Of a stretch of 64,000 nt of DNA, positions 32,545-48,160 are shown piece by piece (position 1 is the first letter of the stretch; each line of letters starts with the position of its first letter). A model generated the notes under the pieces. It did no database searches, was not told the DNA's origin, and worked only from the letters and a program-made list of their open reading frames with translations. The stretch spans positions 1 through 64,000 of the forward strand of contig NZ_JMCB01000007.1 in assembly GCF_000737315.1 (NCBI RefSeq). Reading direction: 5' to 3'. A program made the position numbers and the translations under genes. The stretch is from Hyalangium minutum. GTDB taxonomy: Bacteria > Myxococcota > Myxococcia > Myxococcales > Myxococcaceae.

Positions 32545-34611
32545 TCAGATGTTGATGCGGGAGCTCACCGTCCCGATGTCCAGGCCCCACGCTGCGAAGT
32601 TCGCGGCGTGGGAGCGCAGCAGCTCCGCGAGCCTTGGGTGCACGTCACTCTCTTCGTTGGCCACGATGAAGCCGTAGTTGGTCTTGGACAACATCCAGGA
32701 GATCCACAGCATCTCGGTGGCTCGATCCGGGGCGGGAGCCACCTCGGCATCATCCTCGCCCACGAGGATGCCTTCCTTGCCCCAGCGGAGACCCAGGCAG
32801 GAGTACAGCACCTCGCCCGCGTCCTCCCACTGGAGGTTGTTGGCCCAGGCGTGCCGGAACGTGGCGAAGTAGATGACGTAGCGGCACAGCTGCTTGAGCG
32901 CCTCCAGCTCGCCGGGCTGGGGAACATCGGTCTGGGTCACCGGGCTGATGGCCTTCGGTGCCGGGTCGGCTGCCTTCTCGTCCAGGTTCATGCGCTCGGA
33001 GCGCACGAACCACGGGGCATCCTTTCCCGCGATCCGCGCCCGCAGATAGCGGCACACGAAGGCGGGCACCGAGTGAGCCACCAGCTCGTCCGAGAGGCGC
33101 CGCACCTCCAGCCAGTGGGCCTCCACCGCGCTGCCGTGCTCGGCGAAGAACGCGTCGATGTGCTCTCCCAGTAGCCGCCAGAACAGCTGCGCGGCGTGGC
33201 CGTAGCGGTGCCCCTCGCACACGGGCGCCGCGGGCGCGAAGCCCCGCCAGTCATAGCTGCCCAGCAGATGCTGGAGCCGCGTCTCCACGCCCCGCTCCGT
33301 CAACGCGCTGGCGCGGGTGATGTAGCCATGGGGTCCGACCAGGAAGCTGCTCGCGGAGTGGTTGATCAGCACCACTTCACGCAGGTGAGGCATGAGCAGC
33401 CAGCGCAGCGGGTTCCGCCGCAGGTTGCGGTGCGCGGCGATGGCGTACTGCTCGACGTTGAGGTGGCACTGCCCCAGGTGGTTGCCCAGCTCCGTGTCCA
33501 GCGTGGCGCTCACCCGCGCCATCCGCTTGGCGGCCTCCCACTGGGCGCCATCCGAGGGCGTGAAGGTCTGGCGCGTCACGGGTGAGTGGGCAGCCTTGGC
33601 TCCCATCTCCCGCAGCCCCAGGATGATGCGCATGGGCATCAAGCGCCCCTCCACCAGCCGCAGCCGCACGTCCACGTCCGGGAGACAGTGGATGCCGTCC
33701 TGCTCGTAGGCGTTCCAGGGGAAGTAGAGCCGGAAGGCGTGTGGATCGCCGGAGACTTCGGGATCCCGGTCCAGGATCGTCGAGAACATGCCGTTGAGCA
33801 GGCGCTCGCCGAAGTAGGCGTCACTGCGCGTGGAGCCCGGAGACTGCCGCTCCAGGCGCATGGTGGTGCTCTCAGGGTAGTCGGCCTGCACCTCCGCCAG
33901 GCTGGGCGCGTGCCCCAGGCGGACCCGGAGCAGGTGCTGCCGCTTCACGAGCTCGATGGGCGCCACGGCCTTGAGCATCGCCATCGAGCGCCCCGGGGCG
34001 TACGCCGTCGGGGGCGTGCCCTCCTCGGTGACGAGCAGCCGGGCCAGCGGCGCCGCTGGGTCGTATTCCCAGTAGGGCAGCCGCAGGGTGCCGAAGTCGT
34101 AGAAGAGTCCGCCGTGGTCGTCGGGGCCTCGCTCCGAGCCGATGCGCCGCCAGCTCTCCACCACCCGCCCATCCTTGCGGAAGGTGTGCTGGGGCTCGAA
34201 GAAGCGGAGCTCGAGATCCGGCAGATCGCCCATCCCTGCATCGGCGGGGTCGTAGCGGATCTCGAAGCGCCCCTCGCTGTCCGTGAAGCCCTCGCCCAGG
34301 TAGTCGTCGGGAGAGCCCGGGTCCCGGTCCCACAGCTCGATCTTGAGGTGGTGCAGCGGGAGGGGGCCTTGGGGACCGTCCTGCTCGAAGACGAGGCGGC
34401 CCACGGCGACGGCAGGCAAGGTCGCGGGATCCCGGACGGCCTGAGGACGGCGCACGCGTGGCGCCAGCTCGCGGCTGACGGCCATCCGTTCCTCGGGCGT
34501 CAGGCTCGTGTACCACCGGGTCAGCTCTTCGGGATCGAGGAGGTCTGGCTCGGCCTCTCGAGCCGCAAGGCCCAAGGAAGCGAGCAGGCGGCGGAATGCG
34601 GCAAGCACCAT
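32545..34611 (-). CDS. Lipoxygenase-like protein with N-terminal transthyretin-like domain
   Basis: Metal ligands HLGQCH and FRHAWAN, and C-terminal SRINI. The N-terminal KIELWDRD...DDYLGEGFTDSEGRF is a prealbumin-like motif. Confidence 0.85.
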   Translation of the reverse strand: MVLAAFRRLLASLGLAAREAEPDLLDPEELTRWYTSLTPEERMAVSRELAPRVRRPQAVRDPATLPAVAVGRLVFEQDGPQGPLPLHHLKIELWDRDPGSPDDYLGEGFTDSEGRFEIRYDPADAGMGDLPDLELRFFEPQHTFRKDGRVVESWRRIGSERGPDDHGGLFYDFGTLRLPYWEYDPAAPLARLLVTEEGTPPTAYAPGRSMAMLKAVAPIELVKRQHLLRVRLGHAPSLAEVQADYPESTTMRLERQSPGSTRSDAYFGERLLNGMFSTILDRDPEVSGDPHAFRLYFPWNAYEQDGIHCLPDVDVRLRLVEGRLMPMRIILGLREMGAKAAHSPVTRQTFTPSDGAQWEAAKRMARVSATLDTELGNHLGQCHLNVEQYAIAAHRNLRRNPLRWLLMPHLREVVLINHSASSFLVGPHGYITRASALTERGVETRLQHLLGSYDWRGFAPAAPVCEGHRYGHAAQLFWRLLGEHIDAFFAEHGSAVEAHWLEVRRLSDELVAHSVPAFVCRYLRARIAGKDAPWFVRSERMNLDEKAADPAPKAISPVTQTDVPQPGELEALKQLCRYVIYFATFRHAWANNLQWEDAGEVLYSCLGLRWGKEGILVGEDDAEVAPAPDRATEMLWISWMLSKTNYGFIVANEESDVHPRLAELLRSHAANFAAWGLDIGTVSSRINI

Positions 34612-34690
34612 GCTCGGGGGACCCTACCATGTCTTGCAGTGAACGTTCCCACCGACCTACCCTCACGCGCCGCAACATGCAGGGGGCTTC

Positions 34691-36718
34691 ATGACGGTCG
34701 AGTACACGCTCACGATTCGCACGGGCTCGCGGTTTGGCGCCGGGACGAACGCTGCGATCTCCGTGGCCTTGGTGGGCACGGAGGGCGAGAGCGAGCAGCA
34801 CACGTTGGACAAGCGGTTCCACAATGACTTCGAGGCGGGCGCGGAGGACGTCTACACGGTCAAGACCCGCGAGCTGGGCGAGCTGCTGCTGCTGCGGTTC
34901 ACCAACCCCGGAGGCGTCGCGGGCGATTGGCTCCTGGATCTGGTGCGCGTCACTGCGGGCGAGCGGAGTTGGTATTTTCCCTACCATCGGTGGATCCTGA
35001 GCGGCGCCTCGGCCGAGGTCCTCGAGGGCACGGCGCGGCTGCCGCAGCAGGTGCGCAACGAGCGGGCAGCGTCGGCGCGGCTCGAGCAACTGATGCACCG
35101 CCAGCGGATGTATGTCTGGCGCCCGGCCGAGGCGACCGCCGGCCTGCCTGGAGCGCTCGACATCAGCCAGGAGCGGCCGCTCCCGAAGGACGAGCTCTAC
35201 CGGGGCCTGACGGATGGCAGCTACGAGGTCGTCATCGCCAAGACGCTCGCGGCGATCAAGCTGAACCTGCCTGTGCTCACCAAGGCCTGGAACGGGCTGG
35301 TGGACATCTTCCACTTCTTCAAGAGCCTTGAGCTGCCGCAGCTGTCCCAGCGGTGGAAGGACGACTACGAGTTCGCTCGCCAGGCCGTGCAGGGGATCAG
35401 CCCCGTCCACATCCAGAGCATCACGGCGCTGCCGCAGGGACTCCGGCTGCCGGAGGGGGAGCTGCGCGGGGTGCTCTCGCCGGGCCACTCGCTGGAGCAG
35501 GCACTCGCGGCGAAGCGGATCTTCCTGCTCGACTTCGAGATCCTCGAAGGCATCCCCATGTTCCGGAAGGTGGACAAGGACGGGAGCGAGGAGCGGCGCT
35601 GGGCGCCGGCGGCCCGGTGCCTCCTGTACCTGGATGACACCCGCCAGCTCCGGCCCATCGCCATCCAGCTCGGCCGGGATCCGGAGAAGGACCCGGTGTT
35701 CACGCCCAACGACGCGGAGCACGACTGGCTGGCCGCGAAGATCTTCGTCCGCTGCAGCGAGGGGAACACGCACCAGATGGTGGGGCACGCGCTGCGGACC
35801 CACTTCGTGGCGGAGCCGTTCGTCATGGCGACGATGCGCAACCTCCCGGATCCGCACCCCGTCTACAAGCTGCTGCGCCGCCACTTCCGCTACACCCTGG
35901 CGATCAACGAGGGAGCGCGCAAAGGCCTGCTCGCCGAGGGCGGCGTGTTCGACGACTTCATCGCTACGGGCGGGCCCGACAAGGGCCACTTGGAGCTCGG
36001 CAAGAAGGGCTACCAGCGCTGGAAGCTGTCGGACAACAAGCCGCGGCCGGACTTCGAGCGCCGCGGCGTCCTGGATCCCGCCGTCCTCCCGTACTACCCC
36101 TACCGGGACGATGCGCTGCGGCTGTGGGACGCGATCGAGGAGTACGTGGGTGGTGTGCTCCATCACTTTTATCTGTCCAACGCGGACCTCGCGGCTGACA
36201 CGGAGCTGCAGGCGTGGTGGGCGGACCTCACCCAGCGGGGGCTGCCCGTCGAGAAGCTCCCGTGTGCGGAGCTGAAGCGGGTGGAGGACCTCGTGGACAT
36301 CCTGGCCACCGTCATCTTCACGGTGAGCGTCCAGCACGCCGCGGTGAACTACCTTCAGTACGAGCACTACGGCTTCGTGCCGAACGCGCCGCTGTGCATG
36401 CGTCAGGCGCCGCCCCAGGAGAAGGGGAAGCTGAAGGCGGAAGACATCATCGAGATGATTCCGAGCAAGTCCCAGACGCTCTGGCAGATCGCCATTGGCC
36501 GGGCGCTCTCCAGCTTCGGGGATGACGAGGAGTACCTGCTCCACGAGGGCGGGTGGCGCGAGGATTACTTCCAGGAGCCCGAGCTGGCCGTGATCCGCAA
36601 GCGGTTCCACGAGCGGCTGCGCGCCCAGCTCGCCGCGGTGAAGGAGCGCAACTCCCAGAGCGAGGTCCCCTACACCGTCCTCCAGGCCGATCGCATCCCC
36701 TGCGGCATCACCGTCTGA
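34691..36718 (+). CDS. Lipoxygenase with N-terminal PLAT domain
   Basis: PLAT motif (TIRTGSRFGAGT...GDWLL), WLAAK, HQMVGHALRTH, INEGAR, QHAAVN and C-terminal IPCGITV. Confidence 0.95.
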   Translation: MTVEYTLTIRTGSRFGAGTNAAISVALVGTEGESEQHTLDKRFHNDFEAGAEDVYTVKTRELGELLLLRFTNPGGVAGDWLLDLVRVTAGERSWYFPYHRWILSGASAEVLEGTARLPQQVRNERAASARLEQLMHRQRMYVWRPAEATAGLPGALDISQERPLPKDELYRGLTDGSYEVVIAKTLAAIKLNLPVLTKAWNGLVDIFHFFKSLELPQLSQRWKDDYEFARQAVQGISPVHIQSITALPQGLRLPEGELRGVLSPGHSLEQALAAKRIFLLDFEILEGIPMFRKVDKDGSEERRWAPAARCLLYLDDTRQLRPIAIQLGRDPEKDPVFTPNDAEHDWLAAKIFVRCSEGNTHQMVGHALRTHFVAEPFVMATMRNLPDPHPVYKLLRRHFRYTLAINEGARKGLLAEGGVFDDFIATGGPDKGHLELGKKGYQRWKLSDNKPRPDFERRGVLDPAVLPYYPYRDDALRLWDAIEEYVGGVLHHFYLSNADLAADTELQAWWADLTQRGLPVEKLPCAELKRVEDLVDILATVIFTVSVQHAAVNYLQYEHYGFVPNAPLCMRQAPPQEKGKLKAEDIIEMIPSKSQTLWQIAIGRALSSFGDDEEYLLHEGGWREDYFQEPELAVIRKRFHERLRAQLAAVKERNSQSEVPYTVLQADRIPCGITV

Positions 36719-36739
36719 GCCGCCTCGAAAGATCCTCCT

Positions 36740-38170
36740 TTGCCGAACCTGCTCTCCCGCGGCCTGTTCAACCTGTTCTTCGGTTCCAAGCGCAAGGCGT
36801 TCGAGAAGTTGCCGGGACCCACGCCCGGGGTGCTGGGCACCCTGGGGGATTTCATCGGCCCCAACCCCTGGGATGTGTGCGCGCGGTACGGCCGCGAGTA
36901 CGGGGGCGTCACGTTGATCTGGATGGGACCCAGCCCGGGGTTGGTGCTCAACGATCCGGCGGTCATCGAGGAGATTCTCCTCACCCGTCGGCTCGAGTTC
37001 GAGAAGGGAAACATCGGCACCCAGATCCGGCCCACCGTGGGGGACACGGTCTTCATCGCCAACCAGGGGGAGGACTGGTCCGCCAAGATCAAGGTGGAGC
37101 CCATGGCTCAGCCCTGGGCCGCGGCATGGCTGGCCGCCCTGGTGGGGCCGCTGCAGGCGGCGATCAACGAATCCGTGGACGCCCTGCTGAAGGAGCCATC
37201 GATCGATCTCACGCCCACGCTGCGCCGGCTGACCTTCGACGGCTTCGCGGTGGCGGCCATCGGCGAGAAGACCCCGGACTCGGTGTTCGAGGACTTCATG
37301 CTGTTGGCGAAGGGCGCGGATGCCCGGCTCCAAGCGAAGCTTCCCTTGCGGTTCGTCTCGTTCCCCGAGGGCTTCGAGGCCGCGAAGGAGCGCTTCTACG
37401 GCTACTTCACGGAGCGGGTCCGCCGGGCGCGTGCGGCTTTGAACCCGAGCGCGGTGGATCTGATGTCGTGGACGCTGCGCGAGATGCCCACGGTCAGTGA
37501 TGCGTGGCTCGGGCACATCCTGGGAACGCTCTTCTATGGAGGCGTCTTCTCGACCAGCACCACCCTGGTGGGCGCCTTCCACCAGCTCCAGAAGTATCCC
37601 GCCGCCGAGGAGCGGCTCGCGGCCGAGGCCGCCACGCTGGCCGGTGCTCCGCTGACCTTCGAGTGGCTGCGCGGCGCGCCCTGGAGCGAGGCCGTTGCGT
37701 ACGAGGTGCTGAGGATTCTACCGGCGGTCCGCATCTTCCTCCGCACTCCGGCGGCCGACACGGAGCTGGCTGGAGTGAAGCTGCCCGCGGGTTCGACGCT
37801 CATGGTCTCGAACCAGCACCTGCACCGGGATCCCTCGCACTGGAAGGACCCGGAGACCTTTGAGCCCTCCCGCTGGTTGAATGGAGGCACGGCCCGCGAT
37901 CCGGCCGGGAGCGGGTACTTCTTCCCGTTTGGCCGGGGCCCGCGTGAGTGCGTGGGCGCTCCCTTCGCGTTGTTGTTCCTGCAGACGGCGCTGGCCACGA
38001 TCGCCGCCCGTGTGAAGGTCCACGTCGACTCGACCGAGCCCTTCGAAGAGGGATTCTTCTTCGGCGTCGTCCTGCCAAAGGGCGTCACCGGCCGGTTGAT
38101 CGCACGCCCGTCTCAAGCAGCCTCCCTTCCCGGGAGCGTCCACCCCAGCGCCGCCGTGAAAACCGCATGA
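36740..38170 (+). CDS. Cytochrome P450 with atypical I-helix
   Basis: ExxR (YEVLR), PETF/PSRW and heme motif FPFGRGPRECVG. The I-helix reads GGVFSTS. TTG start lies 21 bp after the LOX gene. Confidence 0.92.
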   Translation: MPNLLSRGLFNLFFGSKRKAFEKLPGPTPGVLGTLGDFIGPNPWDVCARYGREYGGVTLIWMGPSPGLVLNDPAVIEEILLTRRLEFEKGNIGTQIRPTVGDTVFIANQGEDWSAKIKVEPMAQPWAAAWLAALVGPLQAAINESVDALLKEPSIDLTPTLRRLTFDGFAVAAIGEKTPDSVFEDFMLLAKGADARLQAKLPLRFVSFPEGFEAAKERFYGYFTERVRRARAALNPSAVDLMSWTLREMPTVSDAWLGHILGTLFYGGVFSTSTTLVGAFHQLQKYPAAEERLAAEAATLAGAPLTFEWLRGAPWSEAVAYEVLRILPAVRIFLRTPAADTELAGVKLPAGSTLMVSNQHLHRDPSHWKDPETFEPSRWLNGGTARDPAGSGYFFPFGRGPRECVGAPFALLFLQTALATIAARVKVHVDSTEPFEEGFFFGVVLPKGVTGRLIARPSQAASLPGSVHPSAAVKTA

Positions 38171-39027
38171 CCTTGTTCCGCAACCCTCGAGACCGCATCC
38201 CTGTCCTGCTGTTCGCGTGTGTCTTCGCGCTCGATCTGACAGTGTACTTCACGGCGCGCAGTGCGTGGCTCCCTGTCCTCTGGCTCGTCCTGTGGGCGAT
38301 CCCGAAGGGGTGGATCAGCGCGTGGAACCACCACCATCAGCACGTGCCCATGTTCCGCCACGCGTTGCCCAACCGCCTCCTGGATGTGGTGTTCGGGTTC
38401 CAGACAGGGGTGATTTCGCACGCGTGGTTCCTGCACCACGTGCTCGGCCACCACCGCAACTACCTGGACCAGGAGAAGGACGAGGCCCGCTGGAAGCGCA
38501 GCGATGGTTCCCCCATGGGGGAGCTGGAGTTCTCGGCCATCACGGCGCTGGTGGCCTATCCCCGGGCGTTCCGCGTGGGGCTGGAGCACCCGAAGGTGAT
38601 GCGCATCTTCCTGTCGATGGGGGCGCTCCAGGTGGCGCTGCTCGGCTTGCTGTTCTGGCACAACTGGTACAACGCGCTGTGGGTCTTCCTGCTGCCCATG
38701 GGCCTGTCGCTGTACCTGACGGTGTGGGCCACCTACTTCCACCACGTGGGGCTGGACACGACGGCGCACGCGAAGGCCTCGTTCAACATCCTGCACCGGG
38801 GCTACAACCTGATGACAGGCAACCTCGGCTACCACACCGCGCACCACGTGAAGCATGGCCTGCACTGGTCGCAGCTGCCGGAGCTGCACGCGCAGCTGGC
38901 GAAGGAGGTTCCTCCCACGCACTACCGTCAGCCGGGCATTCCGTTCGTGTGGTTCGGCGCGGAAGCCCAGGTGGAGGTGAGTCCCGAGGAGGCTCAGGGT
39001 GTCGGGCTCCTACGCGCGAGGAACTGA
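38167..39027 (+). CDS. Membrane fatty-acid desaturase
   Basis: His boxes NHHHQH, HHVLGHH and YHTAHH. ATGA overlap with the P450 stop. Confidence 0.9.
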   Translation: MTLFRNPRDRIPVLLFACVFALDLTVYFTARSAWLPVLWLVLWAIPKGWISAWNHHHQHVPMFRHALPNRLLDVVFGFQTGVISHAWFLHHVLGHHRNYLDQEKDEARWKRSDGSPMGELEFSAITALVAYPRAFRVGLEHPKVMRIFLSMGALQVALLGLLFWHNWYNALWVFLLPMGLSLYLTVWATYFHHVGLDTTAHAKASFNILHRGYNLMTGNLGYHTAHHVKHGLHWSQLPELHAQLAKEVPPTHYRQPGIPFVWFGAEAQVEVSPEEAQGVGLLRARN

Positions 39028-39057: not shown

Positions 39058-39795
39058 CTACTTCGCGTTCCGGGGCAGCGCCCACCCGTCCGTCAGGCTG
39101 TGCGGCCCGGAGACCTCTCGCGCCACACGCCGCTTCCGGGCGCGGAAGAGGTCCTCATAGAGCCGCAGGAAGATGTACGCGCCGAGCTCGAGCCCTTGTT
39201 CCACCTGGTACGCCGCGCGGGGATCCTTCGCGGCCAGTGGCTCGATGCACCGGTAGAACCCTTCCGCGTGGCTCTGATCGAGCAGCTCGTGGGTGGGGTA
39301 GTGCGTCAGCTCCTCGGCACGCAGCCACCCGCGCTCCACGATGGCGCGGCCGATTCGCGCCGAGATGCCCGAGAAGAGATCCTCGATGACACCGAGCATG
39401 GCGAGCGCCGTGGGCGTGTCGTCATGCGCGCAGACCCCCTGGAGCGTCGAGTTGAACGCGCGCACCTCGGGCCACTGCGCCCGTCGATCGATCTCGGTGA
39501 GGCTCATCCCCAGCCTCTCGAGCAGGGTGAGGAACGTGCGCTCGTGGCTGAGGGAGAGGTCCCCACCGCCGTGCTCATCGCGCACGTTGTCGAGCAGGCT
39601 CAACCGCTGCTCGGCCCGAGGCAGCCGTGCCGCGAGCACCGCCATCGGGCGGGAGAAGTAGACGACCGCGTGGAGGAACTGGATCTGCGTCTCGACAAAG
39701 TCCTCGCGCTCGAAGGAGCCATCGCTCAGGGCGCGCAGATAGGGACTCTCGAAGGGGGCCAGCCGCACCTTCAGTCTCTGGAGGGCGTCGCGCAT
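39058..39795 (-). CDS. Heme-oxygenase-like diiron oxidase (HDO; PqqC/CADD/TenA fold)
   Basis: All-helical protein with ETQIQF, DNVRDEHG...SHE, VIEDLF and THELLDQSH (HxxxDxxH). Confidence 0.82.
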   Translation of the reverse strand: MRDALQRLKVRLAPFESPYLRALSDGSFEREDFVETQIQFLHAVVYFSRPMAVLAARLPRAEQRLSLLDNVRDEHGGGDLSLSHERTFLTLLERLGMSLTEIDRRAQWPEVRAFNSTLQGVCAHDDTPTALAMLGVIEDLFSGISARIGRAIVERGWLRAEELTHYPTHELLDQSHAEGFYRCIEPLAAKDPRAAYQVEQGLELGAYIFLRLYEDLFRARKRRVAREVSGPHSLTDGWALPRNAK

Positions 39796-39798
39796 GCG

Positions 39799-40713
39799 TC
39801 AGATCTCGGAGGTGGGCATGTGCACCCACGTGACGGCGGCTGGCTGGAGCGAGAGCCGGAGCGAGTAGACCGTGCAGACCGCGCCTGGAGTGACTCCCTG
39901 AGAAGACAGCCAGGAGATGTGGTCGCCCAGGCGCTCGTCGATCGCGAAGCAGGCGCTGCCGGGGAGGCCGTGCCGGACGAGCTCTTCGCCGCACCGTCGC
40001 AGGTAGGCCCCCCACGAGGGCTGCCACGCTTCGGGACCCAGGGGCAGGTGGATGAGCGGCCAGGGCTGTCCCGAGGACACGAGCCGCAGATCCTTGCGTC
40101 CCGCCGTCGAGCAGAACCCCGGCTCGTCCACGTGCCCCGCTGGGCCCAGCACCGCCCCCGGCGAGCGAGGCGGAGGGGGCGCCTTGTCGAGCTCCAGCCG
40201 CGCCAGCGCCTCCGGTGAAGCGAAGTAGAGCTGCAGCCGGACGCCCGCATTGCTCATCTTGAACGGGTGCGCTCCTTGGGCCGTGCGCATCACGTCGCCG
40301 GTGGCTCCTCGCATCGCGGCTCCATAGAAGAGGCGCGTCTGCCGCAGGCCGCGATCGAGGATGACCCTGCCGAGCCCCGTCTGGATGAGCCGGCGCGAGA
40401 GCCCCTGGCCGCGCTCCTCGGCGGCCACCTTGAGATCGCACAGGTAAAGCGCGCGGAACTTCCGGCCGCTCACGAAGACATCCCGCATCACGCCCGCGAT
40501 GGAGCCAATGACTCGCTCGCCCCGGAGTGCCAGGAGGAACCGGGCCTCGCCCAGGCCCGAGAAGAATGGGTGGTACTCGGGACCATGGTCGATGAAGAAG
40601 TGATCCGCTCCGTCGCCGATGGGATAGAGGATCGACTTCTCCAGGCGCCGCAGCTCCGGCACGTAGGGAGCGATCCCGCTCGCGTCGGTGAGCACGAAGC
40701 GGACGCGGCTCAT
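39799..40713 (-). CDS. GNAT-fold acyltransferase
   Basis: LYLCDLKVAAEERGQGLSRRL motif A. Translationally coupled to both neighbours. Confidence 0.75.
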   Translation of the reverse strand: MSRVRFVLTDASGIAPYVPELRRLEKSILYPIGDGADHFFIDHGPEYHPFFSGLGEARFLLALRGERVIGSIAGVMRDVFVSGRKFRALYLCDLKVAAEERGQGLSRRLIQTGLGRVILDRGLRQTRLFYGAAMRGATGDVMRTAQGAHPFKMSNAGVRLQLYFASPEALARLELDKAPPPPRSPGAVLGPAGHVDEPGFCSTAGRKDLRLVSSGQPWPLIHLPLGPEAWQPSWGAYLRRCGEELVRHGLPGSACFAIDERLGDHISWLSSQGVTPGAVCTVYSLRLSLQPAAVTWVHMPTSEI

Positions 40714-41669
40714 GGAGGGCTGACCTTGGTGCCGATCTCGAAGCGCTCGTAGAAGAGACTGCGATCCCGATCCAGGAAGCCCTCGCTCAGCGCGTCATCG
40801 AACACGAATGCGGGCTCGAAGAAGCGGCGCAGCGTGCGCTGGTTGTTCAGCTGCCGGAGGAAGATGCGCGCCCCTGGCTTGGCCTCGTGCACCAGCCGCT
40901 CCGCCCAGGACGCGACGAGCGCGTCGCCCGACCAGTCGAAGATGTTCGAGAGGTGGATCAGCTCGAAGCGCCCGAGGTCCGGCACGTCGAGCAGCGAGCC
41001 CTCGATCAGGTTTACCGGGAGCGCTCGCCCCGCGTGGACGTAGGTCGGAGCATCCTCGGACCGGTAGCGCCCGAGCAGGACGTTCTGGAGGAAGGGGTTG
41101 CGAGCGCCATCGGTCCGCGAGAGCCCGCGCTCGAAGGCGCGCTGGAAGTAGCCGGGATAGGAGCCCCGCTCCGCATGCTGCGTGGCCGCCGGGCCGAACA
41201 TGGCGTGCAGGAAGTCGTCGACGAACGTGACGGCGAATGCCGCGGGCCAGTAGGGCGAGGCTCGCCAGCGCTGGAACAGAGAGCGGCGGGCCGAGAGCGG
41301 AGTGCCGGGTGCGAAGTAGGACTCGAGCTCCTCCTCCGTCAGCACGAACTCCAGCAGGAAGCCACGGAGGATGCGGAAGAGCCCCTCGAAGGCGCCGCAC
41401 TGGTTCAGCCCCTCGCGCGAGGAGTCCCCGACATTGAGCCGGTTCAGCTCGCCGCGCTCCACGGCCGCTGCCTTGTCCTGCAAGTGTGCGAGCTGGGCGG
41501 GGTTGGAGTCGAAGGCAAAGACTTCGAGCTGGGGGAACTCATGTTTCAGTGAGAGCGCGGTGCAGCCGCCCGAGGCCACCAGCAGCACGGAGTGGGCTCC
41601 GGTCGCGCGCACGAGCTGTGCCTCCAGCTCGGGATCCTCGCGGACGACCGCGAACTTGAGACGGCTCAA
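40710..41669 (-). CDS. DUF3419 / BtaA-like SAM-dependent transferase
   Basis: FAVVREDP, VLLVASGGCTAL, FDSNPAQL and LSNIFDW match the BtaA family signature. Confidence 0.82.
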   Translation of the reverse strand: MSRLKFAVVREDPELEAQLVRATGAHSVLLVASGGCTALSLKHEFPQLEVFAFDSNPAQLAHLQDKAAAVERGELNRLNVGDSSREGLNQCGAFEGLFRILRGFLLEFVLTEEELESYFAPGTPLSARRSLFQRWRASPYWPAAFAVTFVDDFLHAMFGPAATQHAERGSYPGYFQRAFERGLSRTDGARNPFLQNVLLGRYRSEDAPTYVHAGRALPVNLIEGSLLDVPDLGRFELIHLSNIFDWSGDALVASWAERLVHEAKPGARIFLRQLNNQRTLRRFFEPAFVFDDALSEGFLDRDRSLFYERFEIGTKVSPP

Positions 41670-41738
41670 CTTCCGTTCCTCCCACCGCAGTGAAGTGACG
41701 TCTCGCTATAACATGGGGGCCTCTGGGAGGGCTCCTCC

Positions 41739-42674
41739 ATGCGCGCCATTTCACTGCCGGCGGAAAAGCTGAATGAACTGCAGCGAATCGAGCACCGGCA
41801 CCTCGTGCGCCTGGTGGTGTTCGCCGCGCTCTACCTGGGGGCCGCCGCCGCGGTGACGGTGTTGGCGGAGCGGGTGACGGGGCCGCTCGGGTGGCTCGTG
41901 CGGGCGCCGCTCTATCTGCTCGCGGCGGCCTCGCTGCACGGCATCAGCCTCTTTACCCACGAAGGTGTACACGGGGCGCTCGCACGGCAGCTCGGATGGA
42001 ACCGGGCGCTCGGCGCGGTCTGCGCGTGGCCGGTGCTGCAGAACTTCTCCGCGTACAAGGTGCTGCACCTGCGGCACCACGCCGACCTGGGCGGTGGCCA
42101 TGATCCGGACCACTACACGAACTACACACCGCGCCCGTGGCTCGTCTTCTTGATGAACTGGGGACGCCTGCTGCTCGGCTATCCCGCGTACATCACGATG
42201 ATCCCCATTCTCGGGTGGCGGCAAGGCACGGCCTCGGACCGCAGGTGGATCGCCTTCGAAGTGGCTGCGGTCTTGGGGCTCGGGGTGCTGGTGGTGGCTT
42301 CGCCGCTGCCGCGCGGGGCGCTGCTCCACGGCTGGGTCATCCCGATGATCATCATCAACACCCTGGTGAACATCCGGGGCATGAGCCAGCACACGCTCCT
42401 GGCCGAGCCCGCTCACCCGATTCGGGGCAGCCGGACGATCCTCACCAACCCGGTGACGACCTTCTTCATGTGCAACGAGAACTACCACCTCGAGCACCAC
42501 CTCTTTCCCCGAGTGCCCTGGTACAACCTGCCGAGGCTCCACGCGCTGCTGAAGGACGAGCTCACCGCGCAGGGCGCTCCGTTCATCCCCTCGTACTTCG
42601 CCTTCGTGCGGCGGTGGGTGCTGCACTCGCTGGGCCGCCGGTCGCCGGAGCTGGACCTGTCCGCTCATGGCTGA
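41739..42674 (+). CDS. Membrane fatty-acid desaturase/hydroxylase
   Basis: His boxes HEGVH, HLRHH and NYHLEHH, plus PRVPWYNLPRLH. Confidence 0.92.
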   Translation: MRAISLPAEKLNELQRIEHRHLVRLVVFAALYLGAAAAVTVLAERVTGPLGWLVRAPLYLLAAASLHGISLFTHEGVHGALARQLGWNRALGAVCAWPVLQNFSAYKVLHLRHHADLGGGHDPDHYTNYTPRPWLVFLMNWGRLLLGYPAYITMIPILGWRQGTASDRRWIAFEVAAVLGLGVLVVASPLPRGALLHGWVIPMIIINTLVNIRGMSQHTLLAEPAHPIRGSRTILTNPVTTFFMCNENYHLEHHLFPRVPWYNLPRLHALLKDELTAQGAPFIPSYFAFVRRWVLHSLGRRSPELDLSAHG

Positions 42675-43551
42675 GGTGCCGAAGCTGTGGGCACACGAGG
42701 CCGCGCAAGGGCTCCTCACGCTGGGCCTCCTCGTGTGGCTCGGGGCGAGCGCAGGGCTGATGCATCCGGCGACGGGGATGATCGCGGGCGTGGCGATCTT
42801 TCAGGCCGTGGTGCTCGTGGCGCTCCGGAGCACTGCCTCGGTGCTCCTGCAGAAGGTGCGGCTCGCGAGCGCCTACGTCGTGGGCCTGGCGCTGTTCAGC
42901 ACGCCCCGGCTCGTAGTGCCCACGCTGGGTCTCTCTGTTCGTGACGAGCTGTTGCTCGGGCTGGATCGCACGCTGTGGGGAGAGACCCCCGCGGTGCTGC
43001 TCGCTCCCTTCGCGAGGCCCTGGCTCACCGAGCTCATGAGCACGTGCTACCTCTCGTATCACCTCTACTTCCATGGCGCGCTCGCCTACGCGCTGTGGCA
43101 GCCGCTGGAGAAGGGGAGACGGCTCTTCGAGTGGATGTTCACCGCCCTGCCACTGGGGATTGCCGGTTATCTGCTCGTGCCCGCCGAGGGACCGTTGAAG
43201 GCCCTGCAGGGGAGCTTCGGGACGCCCCTCTCGGGCGGTCCCATCACCACGCTCAATGATTGGGTGGTGCGGCACGGCAGCGCGGTCTACGACGTCTTCC
43301 CCAGCCTCCACGTGCTGATGACGTGCGTGCTCCTTGAGCACGATCGGCGAGAGCATCCGCGCCGCTTCCGGTGGATGCTCCCGGTGGCGGTGGGGCTCAT
43401 CGTGTCGACGGTGTATCTGCGCTACCACTACGCCGTCGATCTGGTGGCGGGCTTCGGGGTGTTCGTGGCCGTGCGGTACGGGTGGAGCTGGTCAGAAAGG
43501 CGCGCCGGACGCCTCAGCCCTTCTTGGCAGCGAGCACCGCGGGATCGATGA
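42667..43551 (+). CDS. PAP2-superfamily membrane protein, AUR1/IPC-synthase-like (PAP2_3)
   Basis: Multiple TM helices, YLSYH, PAEGP, FPSLHV and YLRYHYAVDL. It overlaps the desaturase stop. Confidence 0.85.
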   Translation: MAEVPKLWAHEAAQGLLTLGLLVWLGASAGLMHPATGMIAGVAIFQAVVLVALRSTASVLLQKVRLASAYVVGLALFSTPRLVVPTLGLSVRDELLLGLDRTLWGETPAVLLAPFARPWLTELMSTCYLSYHLYFHGALAYALWQPLEKGRRLFEWMFTALPLGIAGYLLVPAEGPLKALQGSFGTPLSGGPITTLNDWVVRHGSAVYDVFPSLHVLMTCVLLEHDRREHPRRFRWMLPVAVGLIVSTVYLRYHYAVDLVAGFGVFVAVRYGWSWSERRAGRLSPSWQRAPRDR

Positions 43552-44008
43552 GGAGGACGCCATCCTCATCGGCGAACAGCATGTCGCCGGGGTTGCAGCG
43601 CGTGCCGGCGATCTCCAGGGGGACGTTCACCTGGCCCTCGCCGTTCTTCAGGGAGCGACGTGGAGTGACCCCGAGCGCCCGGATTCCCAGGTCCAGCGTC
43701 TCGAGCACCGCGGTGTCGCGCACGCAGCCGAAGATGACCACGCCCGCCCAGCCGTGGCCGAGCGCCTGCTGGGCGAGCATGTCTCCCATCAGGGCGTAGC
43801 GCTGGCTGCCTCCGCCGTCGACCACCAGCACCCGGCCCTCGCCGAGCGTGCCCACCAGCTCCTTCACCCGCGAGTTGTCCTCGAAGCACTTGACCGTCAC
43901 CACGGGGCCCTGGAAGCGGCGCTTGCCGCCGAAGTTCCGGAAGAGGGGAGGCAGGACGCGGGCCTGTTCGCCGTACGCGTCCGAGAGATCGCAGGTGCTC
44001 TGCTCCAT
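43514..44008 (-). CDS. rraA: RraA-family protein (RNase E regulator / HMG aldolase fold)
   Basis: TCDLSD, FGGKRRFQGPVVTVKCFEDNS, VLVVDGGGS, GCVRD and ADEDG. Confidence 0.93.
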   Translation of the reverse strand: MEQSTCDLSDAYGEQARVLPPLFRNFGGKRRFQGPVVTVKCFEDNSRVKELVGTLGEGRVLVVDGGGSQRYALMGDMLAQQALGHGWAGVVIFGCVRDTAVLETLDLGIRALGVTPRRSLKNGEGQVNVPLEIAGTRCNPGDMLFADEDGVLLIDPAVLAAKKG

Positions 44009-44203
44009 GGGAGGCTCCTTCTGACGGCGGGTATGGCCCGAGAGCGGGCCTGTCTGAGGCTCGCGAGGCTGTATACCGCTCACGAGGGCCTGGCGGGCAA
44101 GCCTTGCTTACCCGCCTCCTCGCCGGACCTACGGACGCGCTAGGGGCCCTGCGGGATGACACGGGCGGCGGTGGTTCGCACCTTGGACCCGGAGGTGCCG
44201 AGC

Positions 44204-46768: not shown

Positions 46769-48160
46769 TCAGTCGTGAGCCAGGTAGCGTACCGCGCCCG
46801 AGCCGAACATCTGCTCGGGAGCTTGCCGCTGCCCACGAGGTTCGTGCGCACTGGCCAACAGGGGCTTGCCTCCGGGACCCGGTGGGCCCGGCTCCACCAC
46901 GGCGAACCGCAGACCCACGGCCGTCTTGGCCAGGGCGATGATGGGCAGTCCCTTGGCCGCGGCCTCCAGCAGGGCCGGGCCATCCACCGCGCGCCACCCT
47001 CGCGAGGGCGCGGTCTCGTTCAGCCACTTCCACAGCTCCGTGGGCGTGCCAGGCCGGAAGTGGCCGGAGAAGCCCACGGCGAAGGCTCGCTCCAGCGTCG
47101 TGTGCTGCGAGTTCATGACGTCGAAGACGAAGAGGTGCCCGGACTCGCGTGGCTCTTGGGAGCGCGGCGCGTAGCGCGGGTTGACCGCCACGGCGTACGG
47201 GTTGATGACGTTCTGCGTGTGGATGACCGTGCGCTGGCCTGGGTAGCTCTGCACGGGGGCCCGGAGGCTCGCCTCGGGGTGGGTGATGGAGAGGCCCTCG
47301 GCGGGAGCGCGGCCGTCGTAGACGAGGTTCACGTCAGGGCTGTGAACTCGCTGCGGGCCTGTGGCCTCTCCGCTCAGAAGGACGCGAGGGTTGCTGCCCA
47401 GCGCGGGCCTCGGGCCCGTGGCCTGGGGCGCTGCGGCGGGAACTGGCGGGGCTGCATCCGGTGCAGCGGGCCGGATGGAGGGGAAGGGGGCTCGGGTGGT
47501 GCGGGACGAGCCCTTCCGCGTGAGGGCGAACTTGCGCTCTTTCTCGGCCTGCTCCGCCAGCTTGTGAAGGTGGCTGGCCTTCAACATTACCGAGGTGGAT
47601 TGCCCGGCTTTGCGAGGCACATCGGCTGGCGGCTCATCCGCGCGGGCCTCCGCTGGACGCTTCGGCGGGAGCGCGGCTCTGCCAGGGGAGCTCGTGCCGG
47701 CGCGGTCGCCCGCGGGCCGCTCGGCGAACTTCGTGACTGCGGGAACGGAGCGGGAGGCCTCACTCGCGGGAGCAGGAGCGGCACTGGATTTCGCTGCGGG
47801 CTGCGCGGGCGAAGCCGGAGGCGGGGCGCTGGCGGCGGCAGGCACGGCAGCCCGCGAGGCCTGGGTCCGTGAGGGCTCGGACGGTGGAGCCGCTGGCGGT
47901 GGCGCGCGTCCAGGGGCTTCACCCGCTTCGGGAACGAGGTCGGAGAAGCGGACCGGCTTCATGGGCACGGTGGGAGCGCTGTGGATCCCCCGCTCTCCGG
48001 TTCGGGGCGCCGGCCGCATGGGCACCGTCGAAGCGCTGGAGGAGCGCTTCTCTCCCACGTCCACGATGGGCATCTCGGGAACGGTGGGAGCGCTCTCCGG
48101 CGGAGGCTTGCCAGGAGGTCCACCCTTCGGACCACGGGAATGGGAGTTGTCCTGTGCCAC
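46769..48160 (-). CDS. Pro/Ala-rich protein with C-terminal degenerate papain-like (NlpC/P60-type) domain
   Basis: Long low-complexity N-terminus. The C-terminal NPRYAPR...LFVFDV...WL...GWR.V...YLAHD resembles myxobacterial NPRY..CNIFVWDV domains. Confidence 0.6.
   Translation of the reverse strand: MAQDNSHSRGPKGGPPGKPPPESAPTVPEMPIVDVGEKRSSSASTVPMRPAPRTGERGIHSAPTVPMKPVRFSDLVPEAGEAPGRAPPPAAPPSEPSRTQASRAAVPAAASAPPPASPAQPAAKSSAAPAPASEASRSVPAVTKFAERPAGDRAGTSSPGRAALPPKRPAEARADEPPADVPRKAGQSTSVMLKASHLHKLAEQAEKERKFALTRKGSSRTTRAPFPSIRPAAPDAAPPVPAAAPQATGPRPALGSNPRVLLSGEATGPQRVHSPDVNLVYDGRAPAEGLSITHPEASLRAPVQSYPGQRTVIHTQNVINPYAVAVNPRYAPRSQEPRESGHLFVFDVMNSQHTTLERAFAVGFSGHFRPGTPTELWKWLNETAPSRGWRAVDGPALLEAAAKGLPIIALAKTAVGLRFAVVEPGPPGPGGKPLLASAHEPRGQRQAPEQMFGSGAVRYLAHD

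Follow-up and report, generated by a model that had tools for sequence, protein, structure and literature searches.

The first 64,000 nucleotides of contig NZ_JMCB01000007.1 of Hyalangium minutum (below, the window, to which the locus coordinates refer; GC content 67%) contain three adjacent genes on the minus strand at 39058-41669. They encode a DUF3419 (BtaA-like) protein, a tandem-GNAT acyltransferase and a heme-oxygenase-like diiron oxidase (HDO). This trio is a real, conserved and coupled unit and not a chance neighbourhood, because all three genes are present in 57 of 64 loci, in three gene orders and in several phyla.

We read the trio as one cassette that would build a head group derived from S-adenosylmethionine (SAM) on a hydrophobic acceptor and then tailor it. 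The probability of this reading is roughly 0.4. A fuller picture is more tentative than the cassette itself. The products may be lipids or lipophilic signals of an undescribed class, namely N-acylated homoserine-type compounds derived from SAM, made by a BtaA-like transferase, the first bacterial N-myristoyltransferase-like enzyme using a C-terminal carboxylate, and a new type of HDO reaction. In that case the ancestor of Myxococcota would already have had the cassette, and Rickettsiales symbionts, marine Gammaproteobacteria, Planctomycetota and a Mycobacterium plasmid would have received it by horizontal transfer.

Conservation and coupling of the trio

Related loci were collected by a scan with the DUF3419 profile in one genome per species. 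This yielded 76 loci, in which the partner genes were called by tblastn, and the counts of the trio are based on the 64 loci with enough flanking DNA. Seven of these contain only the DUF3419 and GNAT genes, and the GNAT gene is missing in none (0/64). Where no HDO gene adjoins, the neighbours are housekeeping genes, and no substitute oxidase is seen among them. The gene order is DUF3419-GNAT-HDO in 55 loci, HDO-DUF3419-GNAT in five and DUF3419-HDO-GNAT in three, all three from Rickettsiales. The cassette occurs in many families of Myxococcota, in two Planctomycetota, in Kistimonas, in a metagenome-assembled genome (MAG) of Oceanospirillales and in three Rickettsiales symbionts.

The original prediction, made from the sequence alone, had named a lack of joint conservation in other genomes as grounds for rejecting the trio; the trio is conserved across phyla. 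As a description of the unit, however, it is complete only in part, as in Myxococcaceae the unit consists of five genes, including those of a desaturase-family enzyme and of a PAP2_3 membrane phosphatase or phosphotransferase. Clustering of all open reading frames (ORFs) in the related loci produced only these five recurrent families (DUF3419, GNAT, HDO, desaturase, PAP2_3), and the flanks differ even between relatives at 78-87% amino-acid identity. The range that had been proposed for expression, 39058-43551, covers the two additional genes.

The junctions within the trio are tight, as originally described. The stop codon of the DUF3419 gene overlaps the start codon of the GNAT gene by 4 bp (ATGA, CCATGAGC), and a 3-bp gap separates the GNAT stop codon from the ATG start codon of the HDO gene (TGACGCATG), both being read from the sequence. 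Judging by this arrangement, the three genes are translationally coupled, which we count in favour of a single cassette. The start codon of the DUF3419 gene is TTG, located 7 nt downstream of GGAGGA, and in an alignment both this start and the Shine-Dalgarno box are kept in 5 relatives. The closest named relatives have 84-89% protein identity. The GC content at third codon positions (0.87-0.90 in all three ORFs) is typical of genes in a window with this GC content, and thus the ORFs are real genes.

The three enzymes and their characterised relatives

Pfam matches bear out the family assignments made earlier (PF11899, E = 6.2e-22; PF13527, 9.5e-07; PF14518, 9e-23). All motifs listed at that time are in the translations, namely REDP, ASGGC and NPAQL in the DUF3419 protein, CDLKV and RGQG in the GNAT protein, and DEHG and HELLDQSH in the HDO.

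The DUF3419 protein scores 78.7 bits with PF11899 (cut-off 28.2) in two stretches spanning the domain. It can be aligned end to end with a canonical 400-aa member of the family (hhalign probability 98%, residues 5-311), and the two have in common the motifs xED, ASGGC/ASSGD, NPxQL, NP(F/Y)LQ, LS(N/D)IF and D(R/K)SxFY. Compared with the canonical form, it is about 80 residues shorter; the first 45 residues and an insert of 25 residues are missing. The AlphaFold2 model (pLDDT 93) has a class I SAM Rossmann fold with a helical insert of about 130 residues. The protein is predicted to be a 3-amino-3-carboxypropyl transferase, a distant member of the family from a short subfamily. All of its 1203 homologues are unnamed or automatically named.

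BtaA, the reference and only characterised member of the family, matches PF11899 at P = 2e-106 (PMC6642084). The trio protein belongs to the same Pfam family and has the same class I SAM fold and the shared motifs. However, it is 319 aa long against about 400 in the canonical form, its match to the family is at 6e-22, and its partners are a tandem GNAT and a diiron oxidase instead of the methyltransferase BtaB. The prediction that no BtaB-like gene is present agrees with our data: no methyltransferase was found within about 15 kb, among the window genes at 24.4-52.7 kb, and no methyltransferase family recurs near the DUF3419 gene in the 76 related loci. By its sequence, then, the trio does not represent betaine-lipid synthesis by BtaA and BtaB: its DUF3419 enzyme is short and distant, BtaB is neither near nor recurrent, and the partners are other ones. 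The JGI pipelines do name homologues S-adenosylmethionine-diacylglycerol 3-amino-3-carboxypropyl transferase, as expected if the DUF3419 protein were a true BtaA in ordinary synthesis of diacylglyceryltrimethylhomoserine, with BtaB encoded at a different locus and unrelated GNAT and HDO genes as neighbours. We consider this highly improbable, given the PF11899 score far below that of BtaA, the shortened protein, the conservation of both partners in several gene orders across phyla, and the absence of a recurrent methyltransferase from the 76 loci.

A second possibility concerns the reaction itself. The DUF3419 protein may be an ordinary methyltransferase or perform some other SAM chemistry, in which case the trio would methylate, acylate and oxidise an amine-bearing lipid or metabolite with no homoserine moiety. 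Indeed, the modelled fold is the canonical Rossmann fold of class I methyltransferases, the protein is only a distant member of its family, and its matches to methyltransferase families in Pfam are weak, none of them above the cut-off. A sequence search of PDB with this protein returned only noise (GroEL, E > 0.02). Foldseek matches of the model are weak too and contain no close solved structure; they include both SAM methyltransferases (RsmH-like, phosphoethanolamine N-methyltransferases, O-methyltransferases) and the aminocarboxypropyl or aminobutyrate transferases NAS and CntL, with similar scores. On the other hand, the homology with canonical DUF3419 proteins extends from end to end and covers all motifs of the family, and formation of a new primary amine in the first step would be the simplest explanation for the tight coupling to an N-acyltransferase. 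We therefore regard methyl transfer as rather unlikely.

The GNAT protein matches only general GNAT families in Pfam (PF13527 and, at 3e-05, PF00583), and only over residues 51-117. No N-myristoyltransferase family is matched in Pfam, and sequence searches of PDB retrieved no N-myristoyltransferase chain at E-values up to 10. Its homologues are everywhere annotated as "GNAT family N-acetyltransferase". The AlphaFold2 model (pLDDT 88) is a tandem GNAT, and its top 27 Foldseek matches in PDB are all N-myristoyltransferases (best E = 1.6e-9, TM-scores 0.50-0.57), followed by a tandem GNAT of clavulanate biosynthesis. The first named matches in BFVD, a library of viral structures, are N-myristoyltransferases of giant viruses. 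The acyl-CoA motif R101-G102-x-G104 is placed in the N-terminal half of the protein.

The extreme C-terminus of the GNAT protein is nearly invariant. In H. minutum it is H-M-P-T-S-E-I-COOH, the family form being H-L-x-T-S-E-I with the same end residue. The protein ends in SEI in 111 of 120 homologues. The ending [EDQHT][ILVMF] is present in 124 of 147 representatives, obtained by 50% clustering of the matches of an exhaustive profile search, and the exceptions are nearly all fragments. SEI-like endings are retained in Kistimonas, Planctomycetota, Rickettsiales and Mycobacterium. In N-myristoyltransferases the C-terminal carboxylate serves as the catalytic base. The same is presumably true for mycobacterial Eis, whose family PF13527 is the best sequence match of the GNAT protein.

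Thus the trio acyltransferase resembles N-myristoyltransferases in being a tandem GNAT whose N-terminal half carries the acyl-CoA motif and in its best fold matches in two libraries, and its near-invariant C-terminus would fit catalysis by the terminal carboxylate. It differs from them in that it is about 100 residues shorter, is bacterial, is encoded in an operon with metabolic enzymes and has no sequence similarity to them. Its substrate is probably a small molecule or a lipid amine and not the N-terminal glycine of a protein. The modelled tandem GNAT and the near-invariant C-terminus make acylation of an amine by this protein more plausible than it was when first proposed.

The HDO matches PF14518 (Haem_oxygenas_2) with 81.4 bits at a cut-off of 28.9. 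A search of PDB with the family profile retrieved CADD/CT610 (9e-10), BesC (3.7e-6) and HrmI (2.3e-5), with the ligand columns aligned. The predicted metal ligands are E74, H84, E138, H169, D173 and H176. All six align with the ligands of CADD, and they are invariant in 20 homologues except for D173, which is nearly invariant. Thus the HDO and CADD (4-aminobenzoate synthase) belong to the same Pfam family and have the same ligand set, E, H, E, H-x3-D-x2-H. However, the HDO is far below the curated NCBIfam cut-offs for both CADD (TIGR04305, 31.6 against 200) and BesC (NF042919, 23.3 against 500), and its family has invariant residues of its own, among them many arginines, and a basic tail. To our knowledge, CADD, BesC and HrmI do not have obligate DUF3419 and GNAT partners. 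Judged by sequence, the oxidase falls outside the CADD and BesC families and the acyltransferase outside the N-myristoyltransferase family, and the likeness would be one of fold and mechanism.

The basic tail of the HDO, RARxRRxxRxVxGPHSxA(D/E)GW, is encoded at 39058-39150 and in H. minutum ends with GPHSLTDGW. It is present even in Rickettsiales and is missing from the Mycobacterium copy, as well as from a diverged myxobacterial HDO subtype encoded upstream of the DUF3419 gene (locus L007) or downstream of the GNAT gene (L034, L039). Lone HDO homologues with 40% identity are encoded on Streptomyces plasmids, for example at 46913-47611 of NZ_CP108735.1 among transposase genes. No DUF3419 or GNAT partner is found near them, and therefore the HDO clade extends beyond the cassette.

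As N-myristoyltransferases modify proteins, the target of the trio may instead be a protein, or its product may derive from one: the N-terminus of a protein would be acylated, the HDO would act on a protein residue or on itself, and the SAM enzyme would attach a group to a side chain. The conserved C-terminal peptide GPHSxA(D/E)GW and the many invariant arginines of the HDO would fit this, and CADD, the nearest solved HDO, reportedly uses its own residues as the substrate. However, the HDO family has leucine in the column of the CADD tyrosine that is reportedly sacrificed, and the tail is absent from the Mycobacterium copy and some of the myxobacterial ones. No conserved candidate substrate gene adjoins the trio, no conserved N-terminal glycine is seen in the neighbouring proteins, and the membrane-lipid enzymes and the MmpL protein accompanying the trio (see below) point elsewhere. 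Modification of a protein is therefore quite improbable.

Proposed pathway and nature of the product

Three steps may be suggested. Firstly, by analogy with its family, the DUF3419 enzyme would transfer the 3-amino-3-carboxypropyl group of SAM to the hydroxyl of a lipid-like acceptor, most likely a diacylglycerol-type alcohol, releasing methylthioadenosine and leaving a free alpha-amino group. Secondly, as suggested by the fold, the motif and the gene coupling, the tandem GNAT would acylate this amine with an acyl-CoA bound in its N-terminal half, the carboxylate of SEI-COOH serving as the base, as in N-myristoyltransferases. Finally, the CADD/BesC-like HDO may remodel the N-acyl amino-acid head group with O2, by hydroxylation, desaturation or oxidative decarboxylation. 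This last prediction is the weakest of the three. The oxidase step is probably last and optional, as the HDO gene alone is missing from seven otherwise intact loci. Overall, the mechanism in the original prediction looks plausible, and its acylation step has been strengthened.

The closest known logic is that of the ornithine-lipid pathways, in which the N-acyltransferase OlsB forms an N-acylated amino-acid head group that is then tailored by hydroxylases and a methyltransferase, giving a phosphorus-free lipid. The proposed logic of the trio is similar, with N-acylation of a head group and subsequent oxidative or SAM-dependent tailoring. On the other hand, each step would be performed by an enzyme of another family, and the amino-acid unit would be drawn from SAM instead of a free amino acid. 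Pfam and NCBIfam scans of the locus proteins gave no match to an Ols-type family. The cassette is widespread and uncharacterised, and it is plausible that the trio is a SAM-aminocarboxypropyl head-group pathway, of a type already known, with new partners. The original statement that no pathway with this trio has been characterised agrees with a full-text literature search, which found no paper describing it.

The desaturase and PAP2_3 genes accompany the trio in 23 loci. The former encodes a fatty-acid-desaturase-family diiron membrane enzyme (PF00487, 157 bits, 9.6e-46) with the His boxes HEGVH, HLRHH and HLEHH, all three conserved in 26 sequences. It does not reach the cut-off of any specific NCBIfam equivalog. 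Its best match there is to the arginine (amino-acid) hydroxylase GntB (1.4e-19, below the cut-off), and the lipid desaturases DesA and DesB score far lower. The PAP2_3 enzyme (PF14378, 61.5 bits against a cut-off of 27, 1.2e-16) has the catalytic motifs PSLH and RYHYxxD, conserved in 25 sequences; the motif K-x6-RP was not seen in these sequences, as it is not in phosphotransferases of the PAP2 superfamily either. Sequence searches of PDB gave no matches for the desaturase and PAP2_3 proteins. In H. minutum the two genes overlap by 8 bp, and in the related loci the PAP2_3 gene always adjoins the desaturase gene. The pair is found in four arrangements relative to the trio: divergent upstream (Myxococcaceae), upstream on the same strand (a Planctomycetota MAG), downstream on the same strand, and convergent downstream. 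In Myxococcaceae and some other lineages these two enzymes might supply the acceptor alcohol, which the PAP2_3 enzyme could generate, or further modify the product.

A possible exporter was found on the Mycobacterium riyadhense plasmid NZ_OY970457.1. The region 413165-418826 of this plasmid contains the DUF3419 (26% identity), HDO (41%, E = 4e-47) and tandem-GNAT genes, the latter encoding a protein that ends with NTAEI, followed directly by a gene of an MmpL protein (PF03176, 6e-204). The four-gene block lies between PE/PPE genes and three tyrosine recombinase genes. The MmpL pump would export the product in this species. A lipid or another lipophilic product is favoured by the MmpL gene and by the integral-membrane nature of both accessory enzymes.

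The same enzymology may, however, yield a small soluble metabolite or signal derived from an amino acid and not a membrane lipid, for example a homoserine derivative that is N-acylated and O- or N-substituted, or a compound resembling oxyvinylglycine. In that case the substrate of the desaturase-family enzyme would be the amino-acid moiety, and a precursor would be dephosphorylated by the PAP2_3 enzyme. Several observations fit this possibility. The nearest solved relatives of the HDO are CADD, BesC and HrmI, and most characterised HDOs act on free amino acids. The scores of the desaturase partner are best with an amino-acid hydroxylase, and none of the trio proteins has an evident membrane segment. 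The Kistimonas trio is followed by an efflux pair, HlyD and MFS, and an MFS gene lies near the trio of a Rickettsia endosymbiont. Nothing beyond these efflux genes was found to be common to the Rickettsia and Kistimonas neighbourhoods. Conversely, the sole characterised DUF3419 enzyme takes a lipid acceptor, the best fold matches of the acyltransferase use C14 acyl-CoA, the accessory enzymes, both integral to the membrane, belong to families that modify lipids, and the gene directly after the Mycobacterium cassette encodes an MmpL protein, these being mainly lipid exporters. On balance a soluble product seems unlikely, although it is the strongest of the alternatives.

A number of observations weigh against the lipid head-group cassette as we propose it. 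The likeness of the acyltransferase to N-myristoyltransferases is at the level of fold only (TM-score about 0.55, 11% identity), with no match at the sequence level, and another tandem GNAT, 2wpx, scores almost equally in Foldseek. The DUF3419 protein, with its 78.7 bits, is distant and shortened, and the fold comparison does not separate methyl from aminocarboxypropyl transfer. The three trio proteins are predicted to be soluble, with no obvious membrane segments in their translations, and in most genomes neither an exporter nor a membrane partner is conserved beside the trio. Since the desaturase partner is most similar to an amino-acid hydroxylase, a small polar substrate fits it as well as a lipid does. 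The DUF3419 protein of M. riyadhense lacks the N-terminal segment KFAVVRED, invariant elsewhere, and its gene may be decayed. Finally, we know of no reports of homoserine-type lipids from Myxococcus.

If the proposed pathway is correct, a whole phylum of soil predators makes a class of lipids or signals that nobody has looked for, and the same class is made by some intracellular symbionts and encoded on a plasmid from a species closely related to the tuberculosis complex. For enzymology, the cassette offers a second functional type of DUF3419, a bacterial counterpart of N-myristoyltransferases and an uncharacterised clade of diiron oxidases, in a family known for unusual chemistry. It is small, self-contained and easily expressed.

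Locus layout, neighbouring genes and other contexts

Table 1. Features of the Hyalangium minutum locus
Feature	Coordinates	Strand	Remarks
Divergent lipoxygenase-like gene	32545-34611	minus	partial lipoxygenase domain only, 3e-10
PLAT-lipoxygenase gene	34691-36718		
Cytochrome P450 gene	36740-38170		
Second desaturase-family gene	38170-39027		
HDO gene	39058-39795	minus	245 aa, PF14518
Tandem-GNAT gene	39799-40713	minus	304 aa, general GNAT Pfam matches and predicted fold
DUF3419 (BtaA-like) gene	40710-41669	minus	319 aa, PF11899
Divergent intergenic region	41670-41738		69 bp, between the trio operon and the desaturase/PAP2_3 operon
Fatty-acid-desaturase-family diiron membrane enzyme	41739-42674	plus	311 aa, PF00487
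PAP2_3 membrane phosphatase/phosphotransferase	42667-43551	plus	294 aa, PF14378

The intergenic region between the divergent operons (Table 1) presumably holds the promoters of both. Its alignment with the 5 closest relatives contains a conserved block, CATGTTATAGCG, and a 38-bp deletion in the H. minutum genome. As the region is shorter by these 38 bp and the block is kept, the promoter architecture may differ in this species. Neither a match to the sigma-70 consensus nor an Rfam or riboswitch match was found in the region. Two terminator-like matches were dismissed, as their number equals the chance expectation. At the other end of the accessory operon, the 3' end of the PAP2_3 gene overlaps by 38 bp (43514-43551) with a convergent RraA-like gene (43514-44083, minus strand).

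The genes at 32545-39027 form an island directly downstream of the oxidase gene and convergent with it. The lipoxygenase, P450 and second desaturase genes were considered as a part of the pathway and rejected, as they are absent from all 78 related loci, including those of relatives at 78-87% identity. The island appears to be an independent gene set of the oxylipin type, specific to this genome.

Two other candidate partners, the EF-Ts gene upstream of the trio in six Polyangiaceae loci and a set of tryptophan dioxygenase-like genes in six Archangiaceae loci, were each explained by synteny within one lineage. Three apparent fusion proteins (P0435, P0446, P0502) look like frameshifted or chimeric gene calls and are not reliable fusions. 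The GNAT protein MXAN_6704 of M. xanthus has a lipid-body and development phenotype (PMC4048283). It was rejected as an orthologue, because the trio GNAT gene is always flanked by DUF3419 and HDO genes, and the neighbour of MXAN_6704, MXAN_6705, is a PilT paralogue.

The five-gene module, Myxococcus-like both in its identities (67% for the desaturase, 59% for the DUF3419 protein) and in its arrangement, is present in the record BNCN01000001.1, titled Comamonas sp. KCTC 72670. This is unexpected for a betaproteobacterium, and the assembly may carry a wrong label or myxobacterial contamination. The Brevibacillus laterosporus plasmid NZ_CP011076.1 encodes an unannotated canonical 400-aa DUF3419 protein (PF11899, 7e-71) in a different cluster, with genes of HMG-CoA reductase, a UbiA prenyltransferase, a PEP-utilising enzyme, an unrelated 342-aa GNAT protein and an AMP-binding enzyme. 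This is another uncharacterised context in which DUF3419 is paired with an acyltransferase.

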